Assembly: GCA_011109175.1 (NCBI GenBank)
Contig: RDEW01000009.1
Coordinates: 1,382,950 to 1,446,949, forward strand
Direction of reading: 5' to 3'
Length of the DNA stretch: 64,000 bases
Source: Dicyema japonicum
Lineage: Eukaryota; Animalia; Dicyemida
Shown: one piece after another, positions 22,501 through 63,960 of the stretch
How the letters are laid out: every line of letters starts with the position of its first letter
Numbering within the stretch: position 1 is the stretch's first letter
The notes under the pieces: model-generated
What the model saw: the letters and a program-made list of their open reading frames with translations, nothing else
What the model was told of the DNA's origin: nothing
The model's database searches: none
Made by a program: the position numbers and the translations under genes

Positions 22501-25500
22501 TTTAAAGGCGATCGCAAAATTTGAGTCTTTGGTGAACCAAGTGGAAAAGAACTCCTTGGACATTAAATCTAGATTGGATGTGATCGAATCTATAAATTTG
22601 TTCAAAACTGATTCGAATGCACTGGGGGTTGTGAGTTGTAAGGTATTCGGGAGTTTAATAATCCACAGAAATATTTTGAATATATTGAAAATAAGAGAAA
22701 TAAAGATTTTAAACATTTGGTGAAGAAATATCGGGCGATTGGGCCACTGATAATGAAAATTGAGGGACTTGTGTCGCAATCATCTACAGGAAAGTTGCCC
22801 CTATTCGCCACTTATTACGCTTATTGGGAGAAAATGATGTTTGAGACACTTTTAAGAGTACTATTTCTTCAAAGTGTAGATGACCGCAAGAAATATTCAG
22901 GAATTTCTGAAAGCACTCCAAACTGAGCAACCTCTGTTCCAAATTGAGGCTCTTTTAGCGTCCCCATACGTAATCATAAACCCATCCTCAAACGAAATTT
23001 ATAATCTCATTATGCAGTCAATCAGAGACTGTGTCGAAAGGTCCTCATTTAGTTTATTCCAAAGATCAAAGGCCTTCCTACGATGGCTAAATGGAAGTTG
23101 CATAGAATCCAAGCCAATCAAAATACAAGGTAAAAACGATCCCTTCACATTCACGTTTTTCCTGGACTTGTCACTTCATCCTGCGATTAACGAACTCTAT
23201 CAAAACTCAGTGAACATAGTAAAGAGAGTGATTACAAACAGTCACAATTATCTGTCAAAATGGAAGAAATACAGACCGATTTGGAAAGTTGATAAAGTAG
23301 TTGAAATTATTCACTAAGGCCACAATCGTCGAAAAGTGGTTCAACAAGGGACCATCAATCGTGGCTTTTGATGACCAATTCCAACTTTACACCAAAGTGA
23401 TTGAAGAAATTGAAAAATCACACGAAGTGGCTGACATTGGATGCCTCCGAATTAACATGCAACCTCTGGTTTCCTCATTGAAGGAACATGCTAACAAATG
23501 GATCGAATGCTTCAGTCGTCATCTCAACGACTCAGTTAAAACCACACTATTCGATATTCGGGATTATATAAATGTTCAAAGTCCTCAAATTTTTAGAAAA
23601 AATACAAACAGTTCGAAATCGAACCAGAAACCTTGGATGAGCTGAAGTACATTTTGAAGGGAATCTCTGATATCAAGAAAGACAGACTGGAAGTTGAAAC
23701 CAAAATTTACGAATTGGTAGAAGGTTACCGGTAATCACGTTTTAATTTTTGCAGGCATTTGTCGATGTATAATTTTGAATTATCAGACGAGGAGGTTGAA
23801 TTGGTGAACTATGTTGATTCCAAGTGGAATTCTCTTATTTATCAATCTAAAGTGAAGGATGTAGAGCTGACTTCTGTGAAGAAACGTTTTATTGAAGTAA
23901 GAGATTATTACATCTGAAATAGCTAACAAAATTATCAATCGTTGAATTTTCTGAAAAAGTAAAGGACTTTGCCGACAGATATTTCACATCCGGCCTGGAA
24001 TGTGCGGAAGTGACGTCGATATGGGTTTTTGTCGCTTAAAAATTTAAAGGAGAAACTCGTATGGTTGATTTTAGCGATGAACTGGAGAGACTTTTGAGTG
24101 AACGACAAGAAATTTTGAACGCAGAGCACCTGTTTGATTTGGAGATCAGCAACTACCCAAACCTGACTAAAGTTCAGAAGGATATTCAAGGACTGAAGCA
24201 AATCTTTTTGATATACATTGAACAAAAGGTCGACCTTTGAAATTCCTTGTTAGAAAGCACGTGAGTCGTGGGCGGAAATACTATGGGTCAACCTAAACGT
24301 CCAAATATTGCAAGAAAAAATTGACCAGTTCTAAAAATGCTAAGAAAGTTGCCCAAAGAAATCAAATCTTTCAAATTGTGGGGGATCGTAGATAAAAACA
24401 TACGAGAGTTCAAGGATTCACTTCCTCTTTTTACTGACTTGAAAAACGAGGCACTGAGAGAAAGGTCCCCTTGATAACGATTTTACGATAGACATTGGAA
24501 TGAACTGATGGAGAAAACTGGAAAACGTTTCGACATCAATCCTGACACATTTACTCTTTCGAGTGTCTTTGAGATGAATCTGCATGGCTTCCAGGAAGAG
24601 ATCACAAATATTGTGACGTCGGCTGTAAAAGAAATGGCAATCGAAAAGGTTGAGACAAAATAGTAATTATAGGGAATCAAAGAGATTGAAGAGACCTGGA
24701 CCAACTTACGCTTCAGCATTTCAATGTACACGAAAGGAACCACAAATCGAGGTTGGATCATCGGATCAGTGGACGAAATCGTTCAAATAATTGACGACAA
24801 TTCTCTTAATCTACAAAGTATGGCCGCTTCACGGTTTTCTGCCCCATTCGTCAATAGTGTGAGACACTGGGAAAAGTCTTTGTCCCACATCTCTGAAGTC
24901 CTCGATGTACTCATTCAAATTTTAATGTTTAGGTTTGGGTCAACGTACAAAGAAAGTGGATGTATTTGGAAGGGATATTTATTGGTGGAGATATCCGCAT
25001 GCAGCTTCCTGAAGAAGCAAAGGCATTCGATAACTTGGACAAAACGTTTAAGGGGGTTTGGGATTCTCAAAAGATTATAGATTATGACTGAAACTGCGAA
25101 AAATACCCAAATAAAATTTGCTTGTCACGTCAAGAACAGATTGAACGAAATGAACAGTTTGGCAGCCGGCTTAGACAAATGTCAAAAGTCTCTGAATGAT
25201 TACCTTGAATCAAAGAGAAATGTGTTTCCTCGCTTTTTCTTCATTTCCGACGATGAGTTGCTGAGTATTCTTGGGAGCAGTGACCCAGAGTGTGTCCAAG
25301 AGCACATAATAAAGGTATTTTTATATTACTAGTGTAGATGTTTGACAACGTCAGGGCATTGAGATTCGAAAAAGGTGGTAGTGGGGAGTTGTTGGTTACG
25401 GCCATGATCTCTGGGGAAGACGAAATCATGGAATTTAAGCGTCCTGTTTTAGCCGATGGAAAGGTGGAGGATTGGATGACGGATGTTTTGAAAGAGATGC

Positions 25501-28500
25501 GGGCATCAAACCGTCAGCTCACTAAGGAAGCCGTGTTTTATTACTGTGGAGATGGAAAAACGAGGTTTTCTTTTATTTATTTCAGAGTTTCGTGGATCAA
25601 ATGCTATCAGGGAATGTTTTGCCTTGCAGGGAATCAAATCTGGTGGACGTGGGAAGTTGAGGACGTTTTTGAAAAACTAAAAAACGGAAAGAAAGCAGCA
25701 CTCAAGGATTATCTGAAAAATCTTCATCAACAAATCAATGATTTAGTAATTCAGGTATGTTCTTCGTTTATGGTCAGGTTCGGTCCCCACTTTCCAGGAA
25801 CGACAGAAGGAAGTTCAACACAATATTAATAATTGATGTTCATTCCCGAGACATTGTCGACAGTTTCGTCAGGAATAGGTTTAACCTCTGCGTAATTTTC
25901 AGTGTCATGAATGTCAAAGAGTTTGAGTGGGACAGTCAGTTACGATTTTATTGGATCAAAGATGTTGATAATCTGGTGGTCAAACAATGTACGGGGGAGT
26001 TCAATTATGGCTACGAATATATGGGCTTAAATGGGAGACTTGTTATAACCCCACTTACTGATAGAATTTATTTAACTCTTACGCAGGTATTGGCAATTTG
26101 ATTATCCAGGCTCTATCAATGAACCTCGGTGGATCCCCGGCGGGACCTGCTGGAACTGGAAAAACGGAAACTGTGAAAGATTTGGCGAAGGCGCTTGGTC
26201 TCCTCTGTGTTGTTACAAATTGTGGGGAAGGAATGGATTATAAAGTACAATAATGCTTATTTGAGGCTGTCGGTAAAATATTTTCAGGTCTCTGCCAATC
26301 TGGAGCCTGGGGATGCTTTGATGAGTTTAACAGGATTGATGCTTCAGTCCTGTCTGTAATATCCACCCAATTGAGGACGATTCAGACTGCCTTGATAATG
26401 AAATTGAAAAAGTTTCAGGTATAAATTGGAAACCAACGAATAGTTTGAAGGCGTGGAGATACCATTTGATAGTCGTGTTGGAATCTTTATAACCATGAAT
26501 CCTGGTTATGCTGGGAGAACAGAACTTCCAGAGTCCATCAAAGCTTTCTTTAGACCAGTAGTTGTGGTTGTGCCGGATCTCCAGCAGATTTGTGAAATTA
26601 TGCTATTTTCAGAAGGCTTCTAACGGCCAAGGTCATATTTCGTTTAATATTAAAGGTATTGGCGAAAAAAATGACGGTTTTATATAAACTGGCCAATGAG
26701 CAGTTATCGAAGCAATATCACTACGATTTTGGACTCAGGGCATTAAAGTCTGTTTTGGTCATGGCTGGTGACTTAAAACGAACTTCACCCGATCTTCCAG
26801 AGGCAACTCTTTGTAATCAAATAGATAGGATGTTGTGCTGATGCGAGCTCTAAGAGATATGAATTTGCCAAAATTTGTCTTTGAGGACGTTCCACTATTC
26901 CTTGGACTTATATCTGATCTATTCCCAGGTCTTGATTGCCCGAGAGTCCGCTATCCTGAATTTCACGGTGCTGTCGAGTCTTCCTTAAAGGAAAACAATT
27001 ATATACTGCTGGAATCTCAAGTGATCTAATTAAACACATTTAGGTCGACAAAGTAGTGCAGCTCCACGAAACGATGATGACTCGGCACACGACTATGATC
27101 GTTGGACCCACTGGTGGAGGAAAGTCTGTTGTCCTTAAAACCTTCGCAGATGCCCAGACTAGGTTATAATTGTTGTTAGACCTCCAGACTTGGCATTAAC
27201 ACTAAATTGTTCATTTTAAATCCAAAAGATAGACCAGTCATTGAATTGTACGGAATTTTGGATCCTGTAACACGTGACTGGACGGATGGTCTTTTATCAA
27301 ATATATTTCGTGATATAAACCGCCCTCTTCCTCCAGAAAAGAACGAGAAACGATATATTGTATTTGACGGGGACGTGGATGCCCTGTGGGTGGAAAACAT
27401 GAACTCAGTTATGGATGATAACAAACTTCTCACTCTGGCGAACAGTGAGAGAATAAGACTGCAGTCACACTGTGCACTGCTATTTGAGGTGAGGAGTTGA
27501 TTTTAACTTCAAGGTCGGTAATCTAAAATACGCGTCTCCTGCTACAGTGTCACGTGCTGGGATGGTTTACGTAGATCCCAAAAATCTCGGATATTTCCCC
27601 TATTGGAAGAAATGGGTCAATTTATTTGAGTTTCCTTCGATGCAAGAAAACCTTGAGAGTCTTTTTTACAAATATGTGGATTCCTTGATAAATTTAATGA
27701 CAGAAGGGGTAATGTCAGGAAACCAAAAAGTCAGAATGAAGACTTTCATTCCTCAAACATCCCTGAACATGGTATTTTACATTTTTATCAAGGTCGCACA
27801 ACTCTGCACGTTTTTAAAAATGACTTTAACCAAAGAAATTCTTGATCCTGACGAATTGGAGGCCGCATTTATCCAAGCTCTAACTTGGAGTATCGGAGCC
27901 ACTTTGAATGAAACGTGTCGTGATTATTTTGACAAAGAACTGAGAATGATTGTTGGAAAAAATGCTGTTGCAAATGATAGAACCTTAGCAGGACCAAGTA
28001 CGATTAAATGTTATGTAAGACGAACTGCCTTGTTGTGATTATCTGTTGTATGATTATTTCTGGGACATGTCTTCTTGTCAGTGGATTCCCTGGAAACAGC
28101 TAGTCCCCAAATATGAGCACGATACGTCGAAATTGTTTCACGAAATTCTCGTCCCGACAATTGATACAATTCGAGGGGAATGGTTTCTTGAATTGTGCCA
28201 TAAAAACAACAAACCAGTAATATTTGTAGGCGACACGGGAACATCCAAAACTGCCACAATTTTAAATTACCTAAGAAAAATGGACGCTGAGAAAACAGTA
28301 ATCACAAATATAAGCGTAGGTTTTCATAAACATGAATTTTTCATCACGGACGACTTCTCTGGACGTCCAACGAATATTGAATCCAATATAGAGAAACGAA
28401 GCAAAGATTCGTACGGTCCAACCCCAGGAAAGAGACTTTTGATATATTTGGACGACTTGAATATGCCCCAAGTACGCCTTACCTTAATCATAGGTCGATA

Positions 28501-31500
28501 CATACGGGACTCAGCAGCCGATTGCGTTGCTCAAACAACTGCTTGATCGTGGAGGGATCTATGATAGACAAAAAGATTTAAATTGGAAGATTATCAAGGA
28601 TGTCGACTATTTTGGATCCATGGGAATTCCAGGAGGTGGTCGAAATGAAATTGATCATCGTTTTATTTCAATGTTCACAGTAATTGCCATGACTTTTCCA
28701 TCCGACGAATCCCTATTTAGCATATATAACTCTATTCTGAGTTCCCATTTGAAACCCTTCGATGAAGAAATCAGAAATATATCCTCGGTTATTACAAAGA
28801 TGACGATTAAGCTTTACTGGTGAGTTTGCTGAGTTATTTAAAGGAAATGTGTGAAGGAATTACCACCGACACCTTCTAAATTCCACTATATCTTCAATCT
28901 GAGAGATTTGTCTCGAATCTTCAACGGATTGTTGTTCTCCACCAATACTGCTTATACCAGTTTGGTTAAATTCGTGTCTCTGTGGAGGAATGAGTGCTGT
29001 CGCGTTTTCAGGGACAGACTTATAAATGCGCAGGATCAAACCCTTATAAATGTAAATTACTGAAAAATTCTAGAATTCAATTAAAAATATCGTAGAAGAG
29101 TCCTTTAACAAGGAATCGGAGAAGATTCTCTTGGATCCCGTAATTTTTGGTGACTACGATCCTTCTGTTCAGGGATACAAGACGTATAACCAAATCGAAA
29201 GCTATGAAACAGCTCAGATGCACATTCAAGAGGTTCGGTTAAATAAAAAAGTACAGATTTTGGAAAACTACAATGAGAGCGAATCTCAAATGAACATAGT
29301 TTTATTCAACGACGCTATAGAGCATTTTACACGTGTTCACAGAATATTTAGGACAAGTCGAGGACACCTACTTTTCATTGGAGTCGGAGGAAGTGGAAAA
29401 CAAACGCTTTCCAAACTCGCAGCGTTTGCTTGTGATTACAAAGTCTTTGAGATAAAGTTGACTCGATCCTATAACGAAACTTCATTGAGGGAAGATTTGA
29501 AAATATTGTACAACCAATTGGGGATAGAAAACAAAAAGACGGTATTTATTTTCACCGACGGAAATATTGTCGAAGAAGGTAGTAGTTATCAACATTTCAG
29601 GTTTCTTGGAGCTAATAAATAATATGCTAACTTCAGGGATCGTTCCTGCCTTATACACGGAGGATGAGAAAGAAGCCATCATCGGCCAGGTTTATTTTTA
29701 TCTTCAATGGTAGATTCGAGAAGAAGCCCTCAAAATATTGTCGAGCTCGTCAAAGGAAGAGATTTGGAATTATTTTGTGAATAAGTGCGCCAACAATCTC
29801 CATATTGTGTTGTCGATGACACCAACTGGAGACCTTCTAAGAACTCGCTGTCGAAATTTTCCTGGTTTTCATGCAAATATTGAATCATAGGGATGGTCAA
29901 TAACTGCACAATCGATTGGTTCTATCCATGGCCAGATCAGGCACTCCAGTCTGTCGCATCCATGTACATACCATCAGACGTTTACGCTTTGATTTAACGA
30001 TTTAGAATGTATTGATTCCTTCAGACAAGCGGGAAGACATTATAAGCCACATTATGATGGTTCACAACTCGGTTAGTGACTTTTCCGTCAAATTCGAACA
30101 ACGGCTTAGACGTAAAAACTACGTAACCCCCAAAAATTACCTGGATTTTATCAAAAGCTACTTGAATCTGTTGAATTCGAACGATAATTATATTTTATCA
30201 CAGGTTTATAGACGATGGTTCATTATTAGTGCGAAAGATTGGAGACCGGTTTGAAGAAAATTGAGGAGGCAGGAGTTGAATTGGTGGAAATGAATGAAAA
30301 ACTGGAAAAAACAAAAAAATTGCTGTGGCAATCAAATCCAAAGCATGCGAAGAATTGCTTCAGGAAATTTCAACTGGGACACAAACCGCCGAGGAACAAA
30401 AAATAATTGCAACCGAAAAGAGTGTTGAAATTCAGGAAAAGAGTGTTATCATTGGACAAGAAAAGGTTGAGTGACTAAATTAAACTGTCAGAAAGAAGCA
30501 GAGAATGCACTTAACGAAGCATTGCCGATCTTGGAAGCTGCCAGACTTGCTCTTGCCGACTTGAATAAGTCTGACGTTGTTGAGATTAAGTATCCTTCCT
30601 ATTTATCTTCAGATCCTTTTCTAAACCACCTAAGCCCGTACAATTTGTATGTGAATGCGTTGCTGTTTTTCTGGATCTAAAGAAGTCTCCTGGAAGGCAT
30701 CTTTGGCGGTAATGTCCCAAGCGAATTTCATCAAAGTCCTCATGGAAATGGACGTAGACGGTATAACAGGAAAACAGCTTAATTTTGTAAAAGGTAAAGC
30801 ATAATGCCAACAAATAGGCCATCTTAGCGGTAAGGAAATGGCTGATGTGACCATTGAATCAATGCGGGCTATCAGTAAAGCAGGTGCGGGACTGCTCAAG
30901 TTTGTTAAGGCGGTGATTGGGTACTGTGAGGTGGCCAGGTTGATTAAACCAAAAAGAGACAGAGTTTTTTTAACAAATCAATATTAGGTTGCCAAATTAG
31001 AAAAAGAGTTTTTCACTGCTAAGAAGGAATTGAACTATGTGATGGAATCCCTGAAAAGACTGGAGGAAGAATTGAAAAGTCTGGCGAAGAAATACGAAGA
31101 CGCATCCTTAGAAAAACAAAATTTAATGAAAGAAACGGAAATTATGGAGAGAAGGCTAATAGCTGCTGACAAATTGATAACAGGACTGAGTTCTGAAAAA
31201 ATAAGGTTTACATGTCTAAAACATAAATTAGATGGAACGAAGACTTGGAGAAGTTCAAAATTTCCAGAGTCAAACTCCTTGGTGATTGTTTGCTCTCAGC
31301 ATCTTTTCTGAGTTATTTGGGGCCTTCAGCTACGAATACAGATACGAAATGCTCTACAACTTATGGCATGATAGTGTTGTCAAGAGTGAAATTCCTTTGA
31401 GCCAACCCTTTAAGGTAGAAAACCTGCTAGTCAACGATGTCGAAATTAGCCAGTATGTCTAAATGAGAATTATACCCAGATGGAACTCTGAAGGTCTTCC

Positions 31501-34500
31501 ACCAGATGAACTATCGATCCAAAACGGAATCCTCACGACAAGGTCCAGTAGATATGCTTTGTGCATTGATCCGCAGCAACAGGCCCTCAACTGGATTAAA
31601 CAAAAAGAAGAGAAGAACAATTTAAAAGTATTCGTCCAGTAATGCGAAGATTTGTACTTTTAATGACAGTGACTTTTTAAAACAGCTCGAATTGGCCATA
31701 AAATACGGTTTCCCAGTTTTGTTCAAAGACGTTGACGAATTTATTGACCCAATAATCGACAATGTCATTGAAAAGAGAATTTTGGGTAACTTCTATCAAT
31801 AACCCCATTAGGTGATGTTGGCAGGGAGTTTATCGTCCTGGGGGATAAGGAGATTGACTATGATTCGAATTTCCGTTTATACCTCAACTCCAAGTTACCC
31901 AACCCCAAATACGACTCGAGCATTTACGGAAAACTTATTGTCATAAACTACACTGTTACATTACAAGTTTGCCACGTGTCTAATACAAGGGACTTGAGGA
32001 TCAACTTCTCAGTGTCCTGGTTAAATTTGAAAGGCGGGAATTGGAAGAAAAACGCGAAAGACTCATCCAAGAAACCAGGTTTTAAATACTCGGCAATTTA
32101 GTGAGAATAAAAACCTTTTGAAAGACTTGGAGGACTCCCTGCTCAGGGAACTCACCACATCAACTGGAAACATGCTTGACAACACAGAACTCATTGAAAC
32201 GCTGGAGGAAACTAAAATGAAGGCATCCGAAGTTTTTCGTTTATTTGACGAATCAGGTTAGCTTGAAATTGAAAAATGGGATCATAACTTCGCGAGATAT
32301 CGAAAAATTGCGTGATGGGTACCGTCCTGTTGCTAGAAGAGGAGCTATTTTGTTCTTTGTTCTTGCCGAACTATCCTTAATTAACTCAATGTACCAGTAC
32401 TCGCTTTCTGCCTTCCTTGAAGTTTTTCAGTTTTCCTTGAAAAAGAGTTTACCTGACTCTAAACTCGTCAAAAGACTCGAAAATATAATAAATAGCTTAA
32501 CATACAACGTCTACTACTATGGATGTACAGGTGGGGGTTTCTATTCTTAAACCAGGAATTTTCGAAAAACATAAACTTCTTTTTTCGTTTCAAATTGCTG
32601 TGAGAATTCTAGAAAATTCTGGGGACATCAAACAGGAAGAAATTGACTTTTTCTTGAAGGTTCTGCTTGACTGAATTTTAGGGAAATGTCTCTTTGGAAA
32701 AAAGCTCAATTGAAAAGCCATTCGATTGGTTGAGTGATAATAACTGGGATAACCTTGTGAGGCTTAGTGAGATCGGGGGAAACCTATTTTCAACGCTAAT
32801 CACAGATATTTCCAAAAACGAAGAAATCTGGAAAGAGGTAGTTGAATAATCTCAAATCAGTGGTTCAACCTGGATTCCCCAGAAATGGTGGAGTATCCGA
32901 TGAAATATGAAAATTGTTCAAATTATCAAAAACTCATGCTTTTACGATGCTTCAGAGTTGACAGAATTTACAGAGCCATGGAAAAGTTTGTAAAGGATTC
33001 CATTGGAGAGCAATACATATCTCCCCCAATAATCACATTCTCAGCAATTTATGAGCAAAGTGTTTCCTCTTCCCCTGTTGTGTTTATTCTCTCCCCCGGT
33101 TCCGATCCTGCCAAAGATTTGGTGAAATTGGCCGAGAGTTTGAATTTTGACCCCAATCGAATCAAGTTTCTGTCGATGGGGCAAGGACAGGAATTGGTCT
33201 TTCACTTTGTAATTTGGATAGATTGCCTTACAACATTTGGACATTGCTGTACAACGGGGACATTGGTTGATGCTCCAAAACTGTCATTTATTAGCAAAGT
33301 GGTTGAAAGTATTGGAGGAAACTCTGGAAAAGATTATTAAGCCACATCCCGAATTCAGGCTTTGGATTACGACAGAACCTTCGGAGATGTTTCCCATTGG
33401 AATATTACAGAGGTCCATGAAAGTACAATCAAATAATTTTTGAGGTCGTCACCGAACCTCCAAATGGACTTAAATTGAATCTCCATGGCACGTACATGAA
33501 AATCTCAGACTCTGAGTTCAAGGAAACTCCCCATCCTGCCTTCAATCCCTTAGTGTTTGTTTTGGCATTCTTCCACGCCGTCGTACAAGAAAGAAGGAAA
33601 TATGGAAAAATTGGGTGGAATATTTCGTACGACTTCAACGACTCTGACTTTTCTGTCTGTTTTGACATTTTAAAGACATATCTGACTAAAGCTAGTGATG
33701 CCAATGAAGAGAAGATCCCTTGGAATAGCCTGAAGTATTTAATAGGAGAGGTTGGAATGTAATTTGAGGTTAAAGGTGATGTATGGAGGTCGAGCAATCG
33801 ACGAGTTTGACAGGAGAGTACTCAGAACTTACATGAATGAATATATGGAAGACTTTATTTTTGATACATTCCAAGTATTCCACTTTTACTCGGACAAAAA
33901 CGTGAAATACTGCATTCCACCAGATACTGGCAAAAAGGAAGGATATTTGGGTTACATTGAAAGTCTGCCGTTGTCAAATACACCCGAGGTCTTTGGACTT
34001 CACCCAAATGCTGAGATATCAACATATACCACGGTTTTTCAGTTTCCGTTAGTTGATTAGGCAGCAAAGACAATTTGGAATCATTTAATTGACATGCAAC
34101 CGCAGACTGGAAGTACGGGACTTGAAATGAGTCGGGACGAATTTATTGGGAATATTGCTCAGGATATCCTCAAAAAATTAGCGGAACAGTTCAACCTTGA
34201 GGAAATAAGGAAAGGAATGGGCACTGACATTGAGCCAACGACAGTAGTACTCCTTCAGGAAATCGAGAGATTCAACAATCTCACAAGTAAAATTAAGTCG
34301 TCCCTGAATTTGCTCAAGAAAGTAAACCTTGCTGTCAAATTAGGCACTTATTGGTGAAATTGGAATGAGTAATGAGTTGGAGGAAGTCTCACGTGCTTTG
34401 TTTAACGGAAAGATCCCGGAAATGTGGAGGAAATTGGCGCCAATGACGTTGAAATCACTAGGGAGTTGGATCGAGCATTTGCTGCGGCGTCATGATCTTT

Positions 34501-35031
34501 ATAACAATTGGATAATCGACGGTGAGCCCAACGTAATGTGGTTATCCGGAATCCACGTGCCTGAATCCTATCTGACAGCTTTGGTCCAGACGACTTGTCG
34601 TTTGAACAAATGGCCTCTCGATAAGTCAACCTTGTACACAACCGTCACCAAGTACAAAACAGAGGAGGATGTGAGCGAAAAATTACACCAAGGTATAATT
34701 GACGATGACTTTAGGCTCCTTCATTCAGGGACTTTTCATTGAGGGTGCATCCTGGGACATTGACAACAGCTGTTTGATTCCTCAAAAACCCAAATGTCTT
34801 GTCGAGCCCCTTCCGATTTTAAAGATAACTCCGATCGAATCGCACAGACTGAAGCTCCATGTAATAAATATTAAACATTTTCAGAATACCTACAGGGCAC
34901 CTGTCTATGTGACTTCTGACAGAAGAAACGCTATGGGAGTTGGTTTGGTCTTTGAAGCTGATTTGGCGACAACCCGTCATTTAAGTCACTGGATTCTTCA
35001 GGGAGTCTGTCTGACCTTAAATAGTGACTAA
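19525..35031 (+). CDS. DNAH10: Axonemal inner-arm I1/f dynein heavy chain 1-alpha
   Basis: [13 protein letters not shown]-loops [24 protein letters not shown] and GVGGSGKQ, and C-terminus [14 protein letters not shown], all characteristic of DNAH10. About 69 introns traced, all 21-27 nt. At least 7 small frameshifts. Confidence 0.93.
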
Positions 35032-35099
35032 AACAATTTAAATTAATAAAAATAATTAAGTTTCAATTAATTTTAGAAATGGACTTATAAAATCATATG

Positions 35100-35800
35100 T
35101 TAATATAAATTTGGGAGAATACTTAAAAATATGAATCAACACCGATGGGCCTGTCTGATCGCTGGGAGGTCTGAAGGAAGCGGAACATGGATTTATGTTT
35201 TCCCGATTGGGAACATTGACACGCACCTGGATGATGAGATAGTCCGCATGGATCTCTGTCCATCTGGGTTTGAGAATATGCCAGGCTCAGCGTTTTCGAT
35301 GCGGGGGATTTGTCGACACTTATGGACATCATGCCCTCTCATGCAGAAGAAGTGTGGGGCGATTGAATGATGTCGTGAAACGCGCACTGGAGTCTTCCCG
35401 ACATCATTCCATACTGGAACTCACTGGTCTAGACAAGGGAGTCGGAAAACGACAAGACGGAGTTTTGGATGCAACATGTGTTGTTCCGTTCGAGGAAGGG
35501 AAACTGTTAGTTTTGGATGCAACATGTGTCAATTATCCGTCCTCGCCAACATCATCGGGAGCGCGGTAAAGGTACTTTTCGCCTCAGATAAAGCAGAGAG
35601 AGCTAAAGAAAATAAGTTTAGAGGACTTCTTGACCGATATACCCTCCGCGAGACAACCGGAGCGATAAGCAGTAAGTCCCCAGTCTTGCTCAAGAAACTG
35701 GGACGTATTGTCTCGCTCAGAAGCCATGTTAACTGCGAGACACACTGGCTCATCCAGTTGGTCTCCATAGGGGAAACGCCGCGTCAATAAAGTCTGTGGG
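35100..35800 (+). mobile_element. CRE-like non-LTR element 3' portion (zinc finger + RLE), decayed
   Basis: CGGFVDTYGHHALSCRRS, NDVVKRAL, GKRQDG. Related pieces lie at 37510-37690 (+), 46214-46320 (+), 55730-56090 (+) and 57490-57790 (-). Confidence 0.8.
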
Positions 35801-47686: not shown

Positions 47687-49803
47687 TCAGTAATTACTTA
47701 AGGGTACTATTTCATATCCATATCCAGAAAATGTATTTTCCTTAGTCGCATTTATTTTTCGTTTTGCAATGATTACAAAGATTCCGAATGTTATCAAGGC
47801 TACAAAAATTGAAGATGCGATCCATACAAAAGACATCATTGTTAAGTTGTTTGGTTTTTTATCTATTTTTGCCGTGGTAGAAGTTGTTGAAATTATGGTT
47901 TCAAATTGAAGGACAAAATAATATTTAAACGTCGAGTATTTTCGTGACGAAAACTCAATATTAAGTTTGTAATTCACTGGTAATTGAATTATTGTTAAAG
48001 ATCCACTTTGGAGATCAAGTTTAAAGTACTTGTAAGATTCATTTGAAATGGAATATTCCATGTCGGTGATTTGTTCTGAATAAAATTTAGCAGTGTTCAC
48101 AATGAAATCCCCAACCTTCATTTTAGAACTATTAAATGTACTTCCTGTGCCTAACAAAAATCCACGATAGTGATATTTAAACATATTATTGAAACTTATG
48201 ACTTTAATGAAGCAATTTGTTTGAGTGAATAGTTGTTGCGGTCCCGAGTCATACGCCTCGATGATAACATTATATATTGTTTTTTTGGTTGTTCTCTTAT
48301 TTGTATAAATTATTCCAGTGTTTGAATCTATTTTGAATAAATTATCAGAGTTGTTCTTCGAAGGACATTCAATAATACTCAAATCATTGATTGCATGCAT
48401 TCTATATTTTACATGCGAGTTTTCTTCTGAGTCGCTGTCTTGTGCTTTCATGGTGAACAGTGATTGTTCTGGTGGGGAGTTTAACATTAAATAATATCCA
48501 CAAGCATTGTCAATGAATAAGGGTGGATTATCATTGACGTCAAGTATTTCAATATTTCTTGTAATCGTTTCTTTACCGTTTACTAATATTACAGACATTT
48601 TAACAGTTTTTTCAGACTCATAGTCAAATATTCTGTTTGTTAATGCATAATATGAATTCTTATCGAAAACAAAGTTAGTTGTATCTCTAATATCCCAATA
48701 CTCATAAATTTCAATATTAACCGCAGTGTTCAGTGGCACATTTTCGTAGATTTTCAAGTTCATGGGAGCATTTGAAATGTTTTTAATCTTAAAAATAATA
48801 TTTAATAAATTACTGTCAAGTTTGTCGTGTAAACGCTCTGTCCGCGATCCCATGAATCACGACATCCATCATCAGTCAATTTAATACATGTAATATTAAT
48901 AGTGGTGACAGGAATCCCACTATTATAGTTATTCGCGTACACGTTATATTCAATTAAATGCAGCCAAACTTAACCGAATAGAATGTGAGTTTGGAATACA
49001 AACAGTATCACTTGAGGATGCCAACAAAGTCCCCAGCAAATTAAGACTGAAAATATTGGATTCTGGTTTCCAAGAAAATACTATATTATTTTCTGAGACA
49101 GTATTGGCGTATTTGGAGTTTTGATGGTTAATTTTAATATCAATATATTCTAGATGCTCCAATACATGATTGTCAATGGCAATAATTCTGAGTCGTACCA
49201 TAGTTCCAGGCGTTACATAGGCAAGACATTTTATAGTTAAGCTTGTGGGATTTTCAATTAATTGAAAATCCTGGCTTCCAAACAATGTATATCTAATGAT
49301 ATCGTTTCTGTCTGCATCTTTGGCTTTTGGGATCGTTAATTTTGTCCCACGTTTCAAGTCGATATTATTAAAATGTTTTATTCGACTATCAAACTTCGGT
49401 TTATTGTCATTTATGTCCAATACCTGAAATTCAACACTGAAATCATACTTTCACTATTAAGTATACAAGTAAATTTTCAGATTTATTTAAAAGAAACAAA
49501 TCACAGCTGAATTCATAATTTTTGTAAATCAGGACATTGTCATCATAGTCAATCCTCACTTTAATCTTAATATGCCTATCAAGTGTTACCTTAATATCGC
49601 CGGAGTTGTCCATTGATAAATAATAACATTTTATTGATTTATCATAGTCATTACAGTTAATTCTTATATCCTCACATAAATTACCAATTTTATGCCCAAT
49701 TGGCAACTCTTCGTGGATTGTGTAGTGAATATTATATGAACATGTCAGAGTTATCCATATCACACAAATCAGTGGGTTCTATTTGATTATCAATAACAAC
49801 CAT
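47687..49803 (-). CDS. Divergent protocadherin-like single-pass membrane protein
   Basis: ATG then intron 49779-49800 gives a signal peptide NPLICVIWITLTCS and an EC1-like YTIHEELPIGHKIGNL. Cadherin motifs VLDINDNKPKF, ILDVNDNPPLF, AQDSD and AYDSG. TM FVWIASSIFVALITFGIFVIIA followed by KRK. Further introns of 25, 55 and 26 nt. The 3' end may extend beyond 47687. Confidence 0.85.
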
Positions 49804-54374: not shown

Positions 54375-55290
54375 CTATCGTCGGATCCCATTGATTCTTT
54401 TCTCTACGATGTTTTTAACAGGAGTTAGAATCATGTCTTCTTCAGTGCTGAGAACATCCCAGAGCCTTTTTCCTAGAGCCAACTTTATTGCCGACCTTCT
54501 GGTTTTTTCCATGAGAAACATTATTCTTTCTCTTTGGCAAGAGAAAAACCATGCTTCGCATCCATATTGCAGTTCCGGTAGGATGATCCTCATGAAGATG
54601 AACAAAAAGGTTTCCAGGCTTACAAGCAACTTTCTCGTGCATAAGAGTGCTTGAAGCGCCTTCTTCCTTCTTCGTCTTATGTCCTTCATGAAGGAACCAT
54701 TTCCATCGATTGCTATCCCGAGGTAGCGCATTGAGTTTACTTTAGGAATCTCTAATGAGTAAGGCTGCTTCTGATGCCTCCTTAGGCGACTCACTCGTAG
54801 AGAGCTGGATTTCTCCGAAGACAATCTCATCCCTCTTTTTGTGCAACAGTCCTGAACTTGTCCAATGAATGACATGATCCTTTTCTCCGAAAGAGTTGAT
54901 TTGCTAGATGTATCTGTGATCAGAATATCATCGACGTATATCAATAGATTTGTGTTTATATCCGCTGGAGTTGGAAAATCTGATAGGAATATGTTGAATA
55001 GCAGAGGGCTCAGCACGGAACCCTGAGGAACTCTCCTCTTTAGTATGATGTCTTTCGAAATATGTGCTCCAACACGTACTTGGGAAATCCGCCCTGTTAG
55101 GAAATCTCTTATCCAAATGAGAAGTTTCTTTTGGATCTGAGCAGCTGCTAGCCTTGATAGGAGTGCTTCATGCCACACACTATCGAAAGCCTTGGACAGA
55201 TCCAAACATACCAGGTTGACTAGTCTTTTGACTTCCAGACCTCTCAATACCGTTGGATGCATCTGGTAGATACAGTCCGTGCATGATTTT
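54375..55290 (-). mobile_element. LINE reverse transcriptase, C-terminal two-thirds
   Basis: CLDLSKAFDSVWH, VPQGSVLSPLLFNIF, YVDD and YLGI (ORF 54375-55313). Confidence 0.9.
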
Positions 55291-58129
55291 CCGGTTGTAG
55301 GAAAAAAAGTCAAGCGGAAAAAAAGTCAAGTTGTCTTTTTTTAGTTTATATCGCATTTTTGTGATACTACTAGCATCTTTTAATTTTTAAAATTTTTTTC
55401 AATACTTGACTTTTTTTCCATTTTTGAAAATTTTTCCCTTATAAATTTTCGAAATTTAGCGCAAAACGGAAAAAAAGTCAAGCCCGTTAACGTTGTCCAG
55501 GCCGCATAGGCGGACACGAAGAAAATTTGAATTATTATGTATTGTTTTGAATAGACATTTGTGGTATAAGAGATTGAGGGAATCAAAAATGGAATGACAT
55601 CATTGAAGACGTTAAGGAGTTTATTTAATTCCTCATAGAGTTTTGGACATGTTCCTTCGACGTGGAACAAGTCATTGTACGGATGATCAAAAGAAGGGAA
55701 AGTCTAGTTTAAATTCAGAAAGTTATAAGCCAATTATCCTGGACCAATATTTTGAACAAGAATGCTCATTTGACCCTTATGGAAACGGCGATGCATGGCT
55801 GAAAGCGTTCTCATCATAGTCAATTGGTTCCCATCTGGAACAGAACACCCTCCGAAGTGGGATAACCATCTGTCTCTGGATCGACCTGTCCCAGCCTCAT
55901 CCATCCCGTTGTGCATCTGTTGTAGACTGCAAAGGACTTCCTTCGCTCTCTTGCCGTCTCAACAATGACCGGTCCCGGGGCATGCCTCCATCAACGAGGT
56001 TGTGAAGCGCTCTCTTGATGCGCTCGATTCACCATCATCTCTGGAACCGATTGGCCTGGATCGTGGAAATGGAAAGCACCCGGACGGGTTTTTTGTTGTT
56101 TTCCTCCTCTTGTTTTGTTCAGCCTTTTTGGCGACTGGACATTTTCAATATATAGCATATTGTTTTGTCGAACCACAATTGATGCAATTCATTCTGGTCC
56201 CAGGTGTCTCGCAACATTCGTTTTCCTCTACACAACGGAGACATTCTAATTGTTTTTTAATTCATAAGAGTATGTTGTATTTGCTTTATTATATATGTGT
56301 GCTCCTGATGACGTGTCCCTTAAGATGCAACAACAGTTCAATGCACGTCTATAGATTCATAAATTAAAATTATTCCAAAGACCAAGGGCAACCAAACTAA
56401 AGAACTTGTCTCCAGGTAACGATATTGTCCTCCGGAGAAGAATAGTTGGATACTTTTGATGCCGGCCAGGTATTGGGCGTATTCTCAGTAAGATGGATAC
56501 AATGGAGGAAAAAAAATAATTTTTGACAAAATAGCCACATAATACCACATTGCGCTACGTGGCTATTTATAGATTATTCACGAGTTAAAAATAATATACT
56601 AGACCATGTGCACGCTCCGGGTTGTCGCGAGCTTCGATTATTTAACAAACGACGTTAGTCTCTTCTGGGACCTCCACAGCCCGGACTTGTATACTTATTA
56701 GAGCTCAATGTTGTATGTATATATGTGTCACGATAACTCAGGTGTCTAGTTTTAATTTAAAGTGCTTAGGAGATTTGAAATAAGTATTTATCATTGCATT
56801 TGTAAGAAGATTATTATTACCCCCAGGATCACTGGGTCAAAGAGAAAGAAATAAAAGTTCTCATCTAACTAAGTGATCCCAGACCGACAAAGGAGAGGAC
56901 GAGTCGGGCGGGGTCAAGAATGCTCCTTAAGAGTTTCCATTGTAATTCGATTAAGAAATTTTCAATGGACTGGATTTTGTGTTCTGGTCCAATTAGCCTT
57001 ATTGCAGTCTTCTCGATTGCGGATAGTTTCAATGAGGAGAATCGTGAAATCTTTATTGAGTCTTCTATTTTATCCAAAACAATACTTTCAAGGATTTTTG
57101 AGACCGGACTTCGAAGAAGAGTGTTTAAATAAGCAGTTTAAAAAATCAAGTTTTGATTTTTTACCCACGTAGGCTGTCTCCCATTCTCCCTTATCTCCGG
57201 GATCTCTGGGATCTTTTATTAGTGCCTAGAAATGACTAAAGTGGAATGTTTTTTGAAATTAGCATTGAAGGTCACGCCACCTGACAGGATGATATTAATC
57301 GAAATTTTTAGTAACTCACTCACTTTTTCGACAATGTTTTTATTTGTTCAAAACTTTTTTAAAATTAAGTTCAGTCCATGTATCAGCGAGTTATGGTGGC
57401 ACAAACATACAACATTTGAGCTTCAATTAGTAAATGGATTGTTTTCACAAGCTTTAATAAAATAATAAACTTTTATTAAGGAATGATAAAAAAAGTAAAC
57501 GGTTATATAGCGGCTGCCCTGACTGCGTGACTATTCCCTCTTAGGATAGCGAGCGAGATTCGCTCAAATAACCAGCAGCGCTCACGAGGGTCTCCTGTTC
57601 GTGTAGCGACCCGATTCCCTAGACTTCGTCATCGTATATATCACCAAGGTAACCATACGAAGAGTGTCTTTGGTAAATGGGAAGATTTCCATCCCGTCTG
57701 TTCTCCAATTTCCACGATAAAGTATAACAGGTTCGATGTCGAAGGAACTCATCAGCTTCAAGACCATGTTTAGTGACATCATTTATGGTTACCTGCATGG
57801 GAAATCATCCAGGGCTCTTTGCGGGAAAGGGAGTGAATTCATTATCGATCGATAATCTTCTGGACAAACACATTAGAACCCCATCCAGAAGTGGTGACTC
57901 CCCAACCTCACCAGATCTCTTCCCACCTATTACTCCCACAATCACGTTGGAAATCAATTATGATTTACATATGGATCACAATCCAATACTCTCAAGAGTC
58001 CTGGGAGAACATAAGATGACTAGAACCTTAATTCATGCTCTTAAAAAAATTCACGTTTTTTTAAATTGTTTAAAACTTATAAAATGTAATTTTTAATCAA
58101 AAATATTCTATGAATCAAAAGTTATAAAG

Positions 58130-59280
58130 TCAAAAAAACGTCCAAATTTTGGGTAATGTCAAAAAGTCTTATTAGTTAGCTTCTTTCAACCTCCACGGTT
58201 ACACGCAATCGACCTCAGCTCGTCCAGATTGTCTCCCGTCTTTAGGCATTTCCTCACTTTTTGGAAGTCTTTGTGTAGTATGATTGGGAGTGGATCATTG
58301 GTCGGTCACGGAAATATTTCCCCACAAACTTGAAGTGGTCTTCCATCGCCACATTCGATGGGGCAGCGAGATCCATAGGCAGAATGTTTCCAAACAATCT
58401 CCACCGGCGTCAGTGATCTCCAGGCTTACTCTTGCATTTTTATAAATTCCAGCTTTTAAGATCCTGGCAAACCACTGCTGCCAAATAACACTCTAAGCTA
58501 TCTTATGTGAAACGTATCTAGAGCTTTGATTCCGCAATCGAACAGGTCCAAGTACCAGCATAATATGCTAGAATTGGTTTCACAAATGCATAAACATGCG
58601 CATCGGTATATTAACAGCAAGTCCAATCAGCCATCCTTTTTGAGTTTTTGCATTGCTATTCCTGAAAGTGTTTTTTATGTCTTATGTATCTCCCAGTGGG
58701 GATCAAAGTTTATTAGTATGTCGCCAACGTTCATAAACGATGTTGATTATTTTTTTGATTTCGGCTTGTCCAGGTTTACGATTAGGAACTATTCAATCAA
58801 TTTGTCAGGCACATTTTTCACCAGATGTGAGAGAGCTTCTGCATCCACGGATATAAAATCCACATCATCCGGGTACACGACCTCCTCTAATTTTCCTTCG
58901 TGACACGTACTTAGATCCAATTAGTGTAACTTAGAGATATATCACAAATAGTAGAAAGAATCTCCATGAAGAGAACCGATTGTAGTTTTGAAAGGCCTGG
59001 ATATAGCTCTTCCAATCCTGCCTGACAGATCGGTACTAGATAGCAGTACTCGAATAATCCTTTGTAGCGATTGGTCCACAAATTGTTTTAAGGCAACCAC
59101 TAGCTTTTGTCTGCTACTAGTCTCGAAAGCTCTTGACATATCGATCCCGGATTGTCGTGGCATTTTTAATATCTTTGAGCTGTTCCACATTTCCACTTAT
59201 GGCTCCACAGAATATCCGCGGTCGACTTTCCTTCGGGGAATCCACCATAACTTGCTTACAGGTATTTTCCTGCAGGATGC
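58130..59280 (-). mobile_element. RTE-clade LINE RT remnant
   Basis: GIDMSRAFETSSRQKL...FKTTIGSLHGDS resembles RT motifs 3-4 and is frameshifted. Confidence 0.55.
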
Positions 59281-59423
59281 TTTAAGCGGTTCAAAGCAAC
59301 AGATGTAAGAACTTTGCGAAATGTGTTTAACAACATGACTGGAAATTAATCCAAAAAGGCTAAAATCTAAATATTCAAATATTAATTTTTATGATGCTAA
59401 TAAAGAAACCGAATTTTTACCCA

Positions 59424-60754
59424 TCAAAAAACAAGAATTAAACTAATTAATATCTTGGATTGTTGAAAAATTCAACATTTGTTTCAATCGTCGAATCTAA
59501 AAATAATCATTAATGAACCATTTGAATTTGCTGGCGTTGTTGATTCTTAAAATAATATTTAATTAAACCATTTGAATTTGCTGGAGTTGTTGATCTTAAA
59601 ATAATATTTAATGAACCATTTGAATTGCTAATCTTAAATAACATTTAATGAACCATTTGAATGTGCTGGAAAAAAGTAATTAAATACATTATTCGCAACT
59701 TAAGTATAATCTTAGATTAAACCATTTGATAATTTTTCCCTAACCTTCAGTTGAGAGATTATATAAGATCCTCAAAATAATCATTAATCAAACGAGTAGA
59801 ATATGGTGGCGTCGTAGGATCTCAAAATAATAATTAATTAAACCAGTAGAATATTGTGGCGTCGTAGGATCTCAAAATAATAATTAATTAAACCATGTGA
59901 ATATGTTGGCATTGTTGTTTCTTAAAATAATCATTAATGAACCATTTGAATGTTCTGGCATTGTTGATTCTTAAAATAATATTTAATGAACCATTTGAAT
60001 GTGCTGGCGTTGTTGATTCTTAAATTAATATTTAATGAACCATTTGAATTTGCTGGAGTTGTTGATTCTTAAATAATATTTAATGAACCATTTGATTGTG
60101 CTGGTGTTGTTGATTCTTAAAATAATATTTAATGAACCATTTGAATGTGCTGGCGTTGTTGATTCTTAAATTAATATTTAATCAACCATTTGAATTTGCT
60201 GGCGTTGTTGATTCTTAAATTAATATTTAATGAACCATTTGAATTTGCTGGAGTTGTTGATTCTTAAAATATTTAATGAACCATTTGAATGAACCATTTG
60301 AATGTTCTGGCATTGTTGATTCTTAAAATAATATTTAATGAACCATTTGAATGTGCTGGCGTTGTTGATTCTTAAATTAACATTTAATAAACCATTTGAA
60401 TGTGCTAGAAAAATCTAATTAACTAGATTATTCGCAACTTAAATATAATCTTAGATTAAACCATTTGATATTTTTTTCCGTAACCACTCCAGTTGAGAGA
60501 TTATATGAGATCCTCAAATAATCATTAATCAAACCATTAGAATATTGTGGCGTCGTAGGATCTCAAAATAATAATTAATTAAACCATGTGAATATGTTGG
60601 CATTGTTGTTTCTTAAAATAATCATTAATGAACCATTTGTAGTAATTTCACTCCTAGATCCAACGAGATTCTCTGTATGTCTGAAACCTAAAGTTACTTA
60701 TAAATATTTACTTGCGTATCCAGTTAAAAATAAAATAAACCAGGCGATTATCAT
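59424..60754 (-). CDS. Putative secreted or surface mucin-like protein encoded by 25 mostly symmetric micro-exons
   Basis: Exon 1 (60754-60712) encodes MIIAWFILFLTGYA. It is followed by 24 GT-AG introns (23 of 21-24 nt, one of 32) and fifteen exons of exactly 27 nt (ESTTPANSN-type), plus 45/48/51/54-nt exons. The tail is DSTIETN-ILISLILVF*. Lesions: TAG at 60415-60417 and broken units at 59569-59632. Confidence 0.75.
59497..60633. repeat. ~49-bp tandem repeat with ~740-bp higher-order duplication
   Basis: Unit AATGAACCATTTGAATTTGCTGGCGTTGTTGATTCTTAAAATAATATTT. Block 59645-59945 is similar to 60385-60640. Confidence 0.95.
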
Positions 60755-63220
60755 TTGAATGAAGCAGAATCACTTTATTATATATATATATCGAAGAATC
60801 TTAAATATTTGTGATTTCATAATTGTTATTTTTAGCTATTATCAGAAGCCATCATAGAATTATATAGTCCTCGTTTGACACATGGAATCTTCCAATAGAA
60901 TAATGATGAAAATAACATCGAGTTTGTATTTAAGATTTAATAATTAATAATTTTTATTTTCATTTTCCATTCTTTGTGAACGAAATATGAATATTTATCC
61001 TATTTTTATTAAAAAAAAGTCTATGTTATCCATCTTAAATAAATGATTTCCCGTTCCATCAAATCCCTCATTTGTCTGGTGTTCCTGTCCTTCATTTTAC
61101 TGCACTTGGAGTCTAAATGAATTAAAGGAGGAGCATTCTCAAATATCGAATAATTTGTTCGTATAGATATTTTCAGAAATCGCTCTTAGCTTAAACAAGA
61201 TTCTCTGTATGTCTGAAACCTAAAGTTACTTATATATATTTACTTCCGTATCCAGTTAAAATAAAATAAACCAGGCGATTATCATTTGAATGAAGCAGAA
61301 TCACTTGATTATATATATCGAAGAATCCTAAATATTTTTTTCTTAATTGTTATTTTTGGCTATTATCAGAAGCAAAGCAATCATAGAATTATATAGTCGT
61401 CAATTGATACAAGGAATCTTCAATAGAATAATGATGAAAATAACATCGAGTTTGTATTTAAGATTTAATAATTAATATTTTTTATTTTCATTTTCCATTC
61501 TTTGTGAACGAAATTGAATATTTAATTTTTTTATTTAAAAAAAAAGTCTATGTTATCCATCTTAAATAAATGATTTCCCGTTCCATCAAATCCCTCATTT
61601 GTCTGGTGTTCCTGTCCTTCATTTTACTGCACTTGGAGTCTAAATGAATTAAAGGAGGAGCATTCTCAAATATCGAATAATTTGTTCGTTTAGATATTTT
61701 CAGAAATCGCTCTTAGCTTAAACAAGATTCTCTGTATGTCTGAAACCTAAAGTTACTTATATATATTTACTTGCGTATCCAGTTAAAAATAAAATAAACC
61801 AGGCGATTATCATTTGAATGAAGCAGAATCACTTGATTATATATATCGAAGAATCCTAAATATTTTTTCTTAATTGTTATTTTTAGCTATTATCAGAAGC
61901 AAAGCAATCATAGAATTATATAGTCGTCAATTGATACAAGGAATCTTCAATAGAATAATGATGAAAATAACATCAAGTTTGTATTTAAGATTTAATAATT
62001 AATAATTTTTATTTTCATTTTCCATTCTTTGTGAACGAAATTTGAATATTTAATTTTTTTTTATTTAAAAAAAAGTTTATGTTATCCATCTTAAATAAAT
62101 GATTTCCCGTTCCATCAAATCCCTCATTTGTCTGGTGTTCCTGTCCTTCATTTTACTGCACTTGGAGTCTAAATGAATTAAAGGAGGAGCATTCTCAAAT
62201 ATCGAATAATTTGTTCGTATAGATATTTTCAGAAATCGCTCTTAGCTTAACAAGATTCTCTGTATGTCTGAAACCTAAAGTTACTTATATATATTTACTC
62301 CCGACCGCAACCGGTCGTACTCCGCCGCCCTTCTTATCAAAGGCTATCAAATTGGCGGAGAATATGACATGGCGGATAACATCGGAAAGTACTTCAGATA
62401 GGATCCAGTTCACAAGTGAAGTAATTGAATTCGTAAGACCAAGTCCCTGGTCCTTAGATCTTTCAGATGGCCAGGTCTCATTCCGTCGAGCCCGCCACTA
62501 CTAAGGCAAAATTCCGTATTGCGATGAGAACTTTCTCCGGATGGGAGAGCGACTTGAAGTAGGTTGTGGGGTGGCAGAGAATGCTTGTTTAGTAAAATAT
62601 GTTAGAAGTCAGGAGTCGGTTTTCGCGGTCCATAGAAAAAAGTAACTTGGTAGCTGCGTGGGTACCACCTTCAAATAATTTCGACCGAACAGTTCTCTTG
62701 AGACGGGGCACTTTAACTTCCTGGACGATGTGTCTCCCGCGTACGGNTTTTCTTGCGTATCCAGTTGAAAATAAAATAAACCAGGCGATTATCATTTGAA
62801 TGAAGCAGAATCACTTGATTATATATATCGAAGAATCCTAAATATTTTTTCTTAATTGTTATTTTTAGCTATTATCAGAAGCAAAGCAATCATAGAATTA
62901 TATAGTCGTCAATTGATACAAGGAATCTTCCAATAGGATAATGATGAAAATAACATCAAGTTTGATTTAAGATTTAATAATTAATAATTTTTATTTTCTT
63001 TTTCCATTCTTTGTGAACGAAATATGAATATTTAACCTATTTTTATTAAAAAAAAGTCTATGTTATCCATCTTAAATAAATGATTTCCCGTTCCATCAAA
63101 TCCCTCATTTGTCTGGTGTTCCTGTCCTTCATATTACTGCACTTGGAGTCTAAATGAATTAAAGGAGGCCCATTCTCAAATATCGGAGAATTTGTACGTA
63201 TAGATATTCACCAGAAATCG
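60662..63220. repeat. ~530-bp tandem repeat, 4 units
   Basis: Units start at ~60662, 61196, 61721 and 62251. The fourth is interrupted at 62300 and resumes after the N at 62747. Confidence 0.95.
62300..62746 (-). mobile_element. CRE-like RT fragment
   Basis: SSGGLDGMRPGHLKDL and ANLIAFDKKGGGVRPVAVG motifs. Its right edge abuts a single N. Confidence 0.75.
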
Positions 63221-63479
63221 CATACACAAGAGATATATAGTTCGATGAACTAGCTGTACACTTTCCTTAGAACCTGGCGAATACAGATCCCGTAAAACAT
63301 AAGACATATTAGGAGTTGTAGTGAAATTATCATAAGAAAAAAATAAAATGATCATTTTAATATTTTGTCACCAATGAAAAGAAAATATAATGATTCAGAT
63401 GTCTTATGCAAACTTTGGATAATAAAAATCAAATTAAATATTAACAATTTATTTTGGAAAAAAGTTAGAAAATGATCAT

Positions 63480-63960
63480 ATAGCGACCGCTGCGTGGCTA
63501 TTCCCTCTCAGGATGACGAGCGAGATTCGCTCAAATAACAAGGTGCGCTCAGGGGATCTGCTGAAATCCGATTCCCTAGACGACTCAAAAATTCCAGCGT
63601 TGCAGGCGCAAGGGAACCAAATGTCTCAACGGTAGTGGAACAAACAAAAATCATTTTGTAGAAAAGCGAAATTTGCCCGTTTAAACCTCTCGGCCTCCCA
63701 GCTGCCGAATGAGCTCTAGAGGCACTTGGAGTAGTTTGAGAGGGGCATACGTATCGGTGAGGTGACGTTCCAGACAAAAGGTTTCCTGACTTTAAAGGGG
63801 AAGATGGTCATCCCATCTGTTCGTGTCCTGTCATGTCTGCAAAGAACGACTCGATAACAGAGGGATGTCCAGTGGCGTCCAAAGCTCGCCTAACGACTTA
63901 GTTCAAACTCATGACTAGATGACACTAGCCTCCGACAACCGCATTGTCAAGATACCCTAG
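63480..63960 (-). mobile_element. CRE-like element 3' portion
   Basis: VETFGSLAPATLEFLSRLGNRISADP and a 3' end shared with the 10400-10545 and 57490-57600 copies. Confidence 0.75.

Follow-up and report, generated by a model that had tools for sequence, protein, structure and literature searches.

The 49-bp minisatellite in a 64,000-nt stretch of the Dicyema japonicum genome (contig RDEW01000009.1, positions 1,382,950 to 1,446,949; hereafter the window) is probably a real, spliced micro-exon/micro-intron gene for a mucin-like protein, which runs on the minus strand from an ATG at 60754 to a stop at 59424. Between these two positions the minus strand parses into 25 exon-like and 24 intron-like pieces. 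The exon-like pieces measure, from 5' to 3', 43, 54, 27, 27, 51, 45, nine times 27, three times 27, 48, 45, 16, 26, 27, 20 and 30 nt; the intron-like pieces are of 22 nt (12 cases), 23 nt (six), 24 nt (three), 21 nt (two) and 32 nt (one). The parse bears out the original prediction that each minus-strand 49-bp unit divides into a 27-nt piece and a GT..AG piece, giving 15 exons of 27 nt, and the phase-1 symmetry, the signal-peptide-like exon 1 and the nine-residue repeats rich in Ser, Thr and Pro hold as well. The exon lengths then listed (27 nt fifteen times, 45, 45, 48, 51 and 54 nt) are also correct, but the list omitted the pieces of 16 and 26 nt. The gene is organized as follows:

60755..61010, minus strand: promoter-like upstream region, with TATA-like runs at about -40 and -100 from the ATG; it comes with each 5' module (see below)
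60712..60754, minus strand: exon 1, 43 nt; ATG and a 14-residue signal-peptide-like segment ending in G-Y-A, followed by a phase-1 intron
60688..60711, minus strand: intron 1, 24 nt; GTA...TAG, with size and ends like those of the real introns of the window
60634..60687, minus strand: exon 2, 54 nt; unique sequence, of which only the first ~25 nt are common to truncated upstream copies
60393..60633, minus strand: block A, exons 3-6 (27, 27, 51 and 45 nt) with introns of 22-24 nt; in the assembly the 45-nt exon contains a TAG at 60417-60415
59943..60392, minus strand: core array of nine 27-nt exons, phase 1 at both borders, coding for E-S-T-[T/M]-P-[A/E]-[H/N/Q]-S-N, each with an intron of 21-22 nt before it (32 nt in one case)
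59654..59942, minus strand: block B, exons of 27, 27, 27, 48 and 45 nt; a duplicate of block A, diverged from it and longer by one 27-nt exon, frame open
59497..59653, minus strand: distal units; pieces of 16 and 26 nt and then a normal 27-nt exon, with introns; two in-frame stops in the assembly
59424..59496, minus strand: terminal part; 20-nt exon (D-S-T-I-E-T-N), atypical 23-nt intron (22 nt in reads) and 30-nt last exon (nine hydrophobic residues and TGA)

Tandem Repeats Finder (TRF) reports an array with a period of 49 bp at 59495-60406 (12-17 copies, 77-85% matches), and the core array shows a higher-order repeat of four units, 195 bp long. All 24 intron-like pieces begin with GT and end with AG; 23 of them start with GTT, every ending is AAG, GAG or TAG, and 23 are 21-24 nt long. 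They are composed of A+T at 83% and contain 4% C, whereas the exon-like pieces contain 21%. The fifteen 27-nt exons are all phase 1-1, and the larger internal exons are likewise multiples of three. The only 32-nt intron of the array (60271-60304, minus strand) carries a tandem duplication of 13 nt, with a second GT in it; if this donor were used, the exon would gain 13 nt and the frame would be broken. The region at 60755..61010, which is more than 90% identical across four tandem copies, may act as a promoter.

An array of this kind might also be a non-coding 49-bp minisatellite or satellite, whose GT..AG ends and 27/22 split derive from one ancestral unit and whose open frame and signal-like start are coincidental. 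In fact, the units are non-independent copies, they follow each other head to tail within the 10-100 bp range of such repeats (TRF period 49), and repeats make up 49% of the D. japonicum genome (PMC6736024). We consider this explanation improbable, because the non-repeat parts of the locus obey the same rules: introns 1, 5 and 24 are GT..AG segments of 23-24 nt, yet their sequences are mutually unrelated, and exons 1, 2, 5 and 6, together with the block-B copies, stay in frame. The strand asymmetry argues in the same direction, as intron-like GT..AG segments are absent from all repeat units on the plus strand. A gene on that strand was also considered and rejected, since there its longest ORF does not exceed 58 codons and the units contain no intron-like GT..AG.

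The introns of the array match those of the genuine genes of the window, as had been predicted. The dynein and condensin genes consist of long ORFs joined by GT..AG segments of 21-27 nt, which usually start with GTT or GTA and end with TAG, AAG, GAG or CAG. The dynein heavy-chain gene (19900-35400, plus strand), with many such introns, mostly in phase 0, makes a good local training set for the splice signals of this genome. Among animals, introns this short have been reported only in myxobolid myxozoans and in D. japonicum, where they are below 30 bp and the splice signals are reduced to about GTa...AG (PMC13644364). The introns of the array fit these in size and signals; that work, however, concerns introns genome-wide and does not describe tandem arrays of exon plus intron. 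A scan of the conserved genes of the window for exons of at most 45 nt between two tiny introns gave only four hits, which all fell within long ORFs or within transposon sequence and did not convince, so that no 27-nt exon flanked by two tiny introns can be demonstrated in these genes.

When the exons of the assembly are joined, they give 783 nt, or 261 codons, with three internal stops in the ATG frame, compared with 25-55 in-frame stops per frame if the region is read unspliced on either strand. The first stop is a TAG, which the first 45-nt exon carries at 60417-60415; two more arise from the pieces that are not multiples of three, of 16 nt (59632-59617) and 26 nt (59594-59569). The intact spliced frame that had been claimed is thus not present in the assembly and is regained only through contigs of raw reads. 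The non-redundant exons (324 nt) contain one stop against 8.1 expected from composition-matched shuffles (P=0.0016; chance of zero stops 1e-4) and none in the read version; this deficit (P ~1e-3 to 1e-4) argues against a satellite, with P values that are optimistic because the splice sites were picked with an open frame in view.

Four sequencing runs from one 2019 sample, the only runs found, were compared with positions 58300-61000. All four are of genomic DNA: coverage stays even across intergenic and transposon sequence, Nextera mate-pair adaptors occur in loose ends and there are no 22-nt skips. Contigs of reads at single-copy depth depart from the assembly at all three frame-breaking places, and each departure restores the frame. 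The differences are the following:

60415 C>A and 60417 A>T: a sense codon replaces the minus-strand TAG; only contig there, 1435/1435 in X1
59592/59593: one extra base, 26-nt piece becomes 27 nt
joint 60071>59636, in three runs: a full 27-nt repeat exon after the intron, in place of the 16-nt piece
59737, 59743 and 59744: three extra bases, 48-nt exon becomes 51 nt like its paralogue
59466 and 59774: single-base differences, both intronic

The frame supported by reads is open across about 260 codons, and no read contig agrees with the assembly at 60415/60417. At single-copy depth the length differences are multiples of three in exons and of 1 nt in introns, a pattern that also speaks against a satellite. 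In the non-genic flank the assembly is without single bases that are present in all or most read contigs (58405, 58590, 58634 and 59148). These four 1-nt indels suggest that this stretch derives from unpolished long reads and that small frameshifts in it cannot be trusted; the published assembly was obtained by merging PacBio RS II and Illumina assemblies (PMC6736024). Most simply, then, the assembly here consists of long-read sequence that was left unpolished, and the true sequence is in frame.

The rescuing contigs could, on the other hand, come from paralogues, since parts of the locus are multicopy. The locus would then be a dead or dying copy of a multicopy family of micro-exon mucin-like genes, the stops of the assembly would be real and the in-frame contigs would belong to intact paralogues. 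We judge this unlikely, even if the three stops favour it and low-depth paralogous variants of the reads include some with 26- or 28-nt 'exons'. The sense codon at 60415/60417 is found at single-copy depth in the one contig that covers the place, and the 1-nt indels outside the gene point to an error of assembly and not to biology. It is very improbable that the locus produces a spliced transcript without a stable protein, either a non-coding RNA or a target of nonsense-mediated decay left by a former gene: the assembly stops and the lack of homologues are compatible with such a transcript and nothing supports it directly, while the frame open in the reads and a signal-peptide-like segment intact in two of the four 5' modules go against it.

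These modules bear on the dying-copy explanation too, as three truncated ones adjoin the gene, one frameshifted and one with a LINE insert:

61015..63055, minus strand: three more tandem 5' modules whose ATGs are at 61295, 61813 and 62795; each comprises the promoter-like region, exon 1, intron 1 and 25 nt from the start of exon 2

They lie upstream of the gene with a period of about 520-540 bp, and each hits a stop soon into exon 2, after some 23 codons. The copy at 61295 has one base missing in exon 1. In the copy at 62795 a GC-richer insert of 450 bp with one N is placed exactly inside the 24-nt intron 1 (62300-62752, minus strand). It translates, with frameshifts, to motifs of non-LTR reverse transcriptases (..GLDGMRPGHLKDL.., ..KKGGGVRPVAVG), the translation being what its LINE nature was judged from, and it marks either the insertion of a LINE or a join made in scaffolding. 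Another LINE fragment is found downstream of the gene.

Read contigs reach 60-300 times the single-copy depth, in all four libraries, at 59483-59573, 59847-60028 and 60575-60665. These sites coincide exactly with the 25-mer CAAATGGTTCATTAATGATTATTTT (59500-59524, 59924-59948 and 60615-60639), which suggests 60-300 genomic copies of units with this intron variant; for the 5' module, depth suggests about 10 copies. Paralogues of the 5' module and of several units thus exist, at ~5-300 times single-copy depth, as expected if the locus were a dead member of a family, and clusters of the polymorphic mucin genes of Schistosoma mansoni (SmPoMuc) also hold truncated genes and groups of pseudogenes (PMC2576457). 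Equally, sites sharing a 25-mer at such a depth are what a dispersed satellite would give. The surroundings are rich in transposons, with LINE fragments and truncated copies of the gene's 5' end around the locus. Open reading frames of the window, whose GC content is about 36%, include cadherin, dynein heavy chain, condensin Cnd3, reverse transcriptase and integrase, among them:

47687-48853, minus strand: cadherin-domain ORF
54375-55313, minus strand: reverse-transcriptase ORF
16573-17148, plus strand: integrase-core ORF

Variation among units has a distinct pattern. The ten exons of the E-S-T type differ at five positions, the only one with three alleles being exon base 11 (G/T/A), a synonymous third base of a Thr codon, as the original prediction had it for the most variable position of the repeat; the remaining four change the residue. 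The predicted pair of paralogous exons that differ by an in-frame 3-nt indel was also found (51 and 48 nt, net difference 3 nt). A comparison of block A with block B shows substitutions at 10 of 147 exon positions and at 1 of 91 intron positions, and all ten exon substitutions are non-synonymous; block B is still open despite these and the net 3-nt indel. Evolution is therefore quicker in the exons than in the introns, whereas a housekeeping gene would show the reverse. The exon changes between the blocks show no sign of purifying selection. A repeat protein under diversifying or relaxed selection, with tight constraint on its tiny introns, could give such a pattern, and so could a sequence free of coding constraint. 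The wholly non-synonymous exon changes are in favour of a satellite, whereas introns better conserved than exons are not predicted for a neutral one. At the joints 59532-59917 and 59532-60608, contigs at 1-5% of single-copy depth carry other 27-nt exons, E-T-I-[L/K/M/V]-R-A-N-S-N, with the same introns, and a few of these variants are of 26 or 28 nt; such low-depth exons could be rare alleles, paralogues or the sequence of a co-infecting relative.

The preferred reading, a spliced mucin-like gene, predicts the following product. Exon 1 has a hydrophobic core at residues 2-11 and G-Y-A before the predicted cut, with small residues at -3 and -1; Kyte-Doolittle means over nine residues are 1.3-3.1 for residues 1-16 and negative afterwards. 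Ser, Thr, Pro and Asn account for 53% of the mature part, with 40 Ser, 39 Thr and 21 Pro among about 243 residues. Nine-residue repeats in which Pro, Thr and Ser abound, at least 17 in number and of the type E-S-T-T-P-A-[H/N/Q]-S-N and relatives, are interspersed with two copies of an exon pair that is less repetitive, blocks A and B. There are 14 N-x-S/T sequons, most of them N-E-S created across an exon-exon junction. The end of the product extends 16 residues past the repeats. The hydrophobic tail that had been claimed holds in part: the C-terminus consists of nine hydrophobic residues if the atypical last 23-nt intron is spliced out, a segment too short for a transmembrane or GPI anchor, and retention of this intron moves the stop nine codons downstream. 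No protein homologue was found for the spliced N-terminal 74 residues, the only part searched, among candidate proteins of 41-130 residues, a result that a satellite would also give; no Rfam family was found over 58500-63500, and the exact spliced string made of the end of exon 2, exon 3 and the start of exon 4 was absent, as expected, from metagenome contigs.

On this basis, a mechanism of two parts can be proposed: (i) at the DNA level, the duplicating unit would be a 27-nt exon plus a 22-nt intron (49 bp), in a gene of about 25 exons separated by GT-AG introns of 21-24 nt, and unequal recombination would add or remove single 49-bp units or the 195-bp block of four; (ii) at the RNA level, we infer that the array gene is transcribed and spliced, and its mRNA would encode a protein of about 260 residues, with a cleavable signal peptide followed by nine-residue repeats rich in Ser, Thr, Pro and Asn. 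Although 49 is not a multiple of three, gain or loss of units would always be in frame because exons are multiples of three with phase-1 borders and introns are removed; the same symmetry would permit exon skipping in frame. The product would be a secreted or surface mucin-like glycoprotein of variable length, its secretion, glycosylation and surface role being suggested by composition.

The closest analogue is SmPoMuc, in which a 27-bp exon 2 and conserved introns are repeated, up to about 20 times, as units of ~1 kb (PMC2576457). The predicted likeness to this system is therefore sound: in both, a 27-bp exon codes for a nine-residue repeat and is duplicated in tandem together with its flanking intron, and the truncated 5' modules resemble the truncated genes without repeats that occur in SmPoMuc clusters, where assembly also fails in the repeat (PMC2576457). 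The likeness is one of architecture only. The ~1-kb SmPoMuc unit contains introns of ~550 bp and microsatellite spacers, while the present unit is of 49 bp; neither the conserved C-terminal part (exons 3-15) nor the intronic hammerhead ribozyme of SmPoMuc is seen here, and the N-terminal 74 residues show no sequence similarity to it, so that homology is not claimed. The micro-exon genes (MEGs) of Schistosoma, as described in a preprint (bioRxiv 10.1101/2023.06.21.545858), code for secreted products with a signal peptide, by means of a coding sequence made mostly of short symmetric exons of a multiple of three. Such exons form most of the coding sequence here too, after a signal-peptide-like start. 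However, the introns of MEGs reach 5 kb and their exons do not derive from one tandemly copied unit, whereas here the introns are of 21-32 nt and the units in tandem, and no relationship to the named MEG sequence families was found.

Animal mucins of the MUC5AC/MUC5B type are secreted glycoproteins with Pro/Thr/Ser-rich repeats of variable number (VNTR). The predicted product shares with them variable-number tandem repeats rich in Pro, Thr and Ser, but in those mucins the repeats are contained in one large uninterrupted exon and their unit is a multiple of three, while the 49-bp unit described here is not, and becomes coding only once spliced. Since the sequence-level features of SmPoMuc and of MEGs are lacking and no homologue was found for the part searched, we assign the gene to neither group and regard it as an extremely compact variant of a known architecture.

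A wider proposal, which we hold to be doubtful, is that the locus belongs to a system spread over the whole genome, in which almost invariant 22-nt introns would frame hundreds of 27-nt cassette exons, some of them hypervariable like the E-T-I-[L/K/M/V]-R-A-N-S-N variants of the reads, and 49-bp unequal crossing-over together with skipping of phase-1 exons would generate diverse surface glycoproteins; this would be a dicyemid counterpart of SmPoMuc and MEGs at about 1/20 of the genomic cost.

If spliced as predicted, this is apparently the most compact gene with one exon per repeat described so far. A minisatellite whose unit (49 bp) is not a multiple of three would become coding only after removal of a 22-nt intron, exon plus intron would form a single mutational unit, and the length of the protein would shift without a break of the frame. 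The gene would also provide a natural test of the limit of spliceosomal packing, with exons of 27 nt set between introns of 22 nt. The original prediction that such an array would escape gene finders is in agreement with the published pipeline, in which gene prediction was preceded by the masking of repeats with more than 30 occurrences (PMC6736024); repeat masking and default minimum intron lengths would then hide a class of secreted proteins of dicyemids; the published gene count of D. japonicum is only 5,012. Finally, genes of this kind would be candidates for molecules at the interface between dicyemids and their cephalopods, and one may speculate that the product of this locus acts there.
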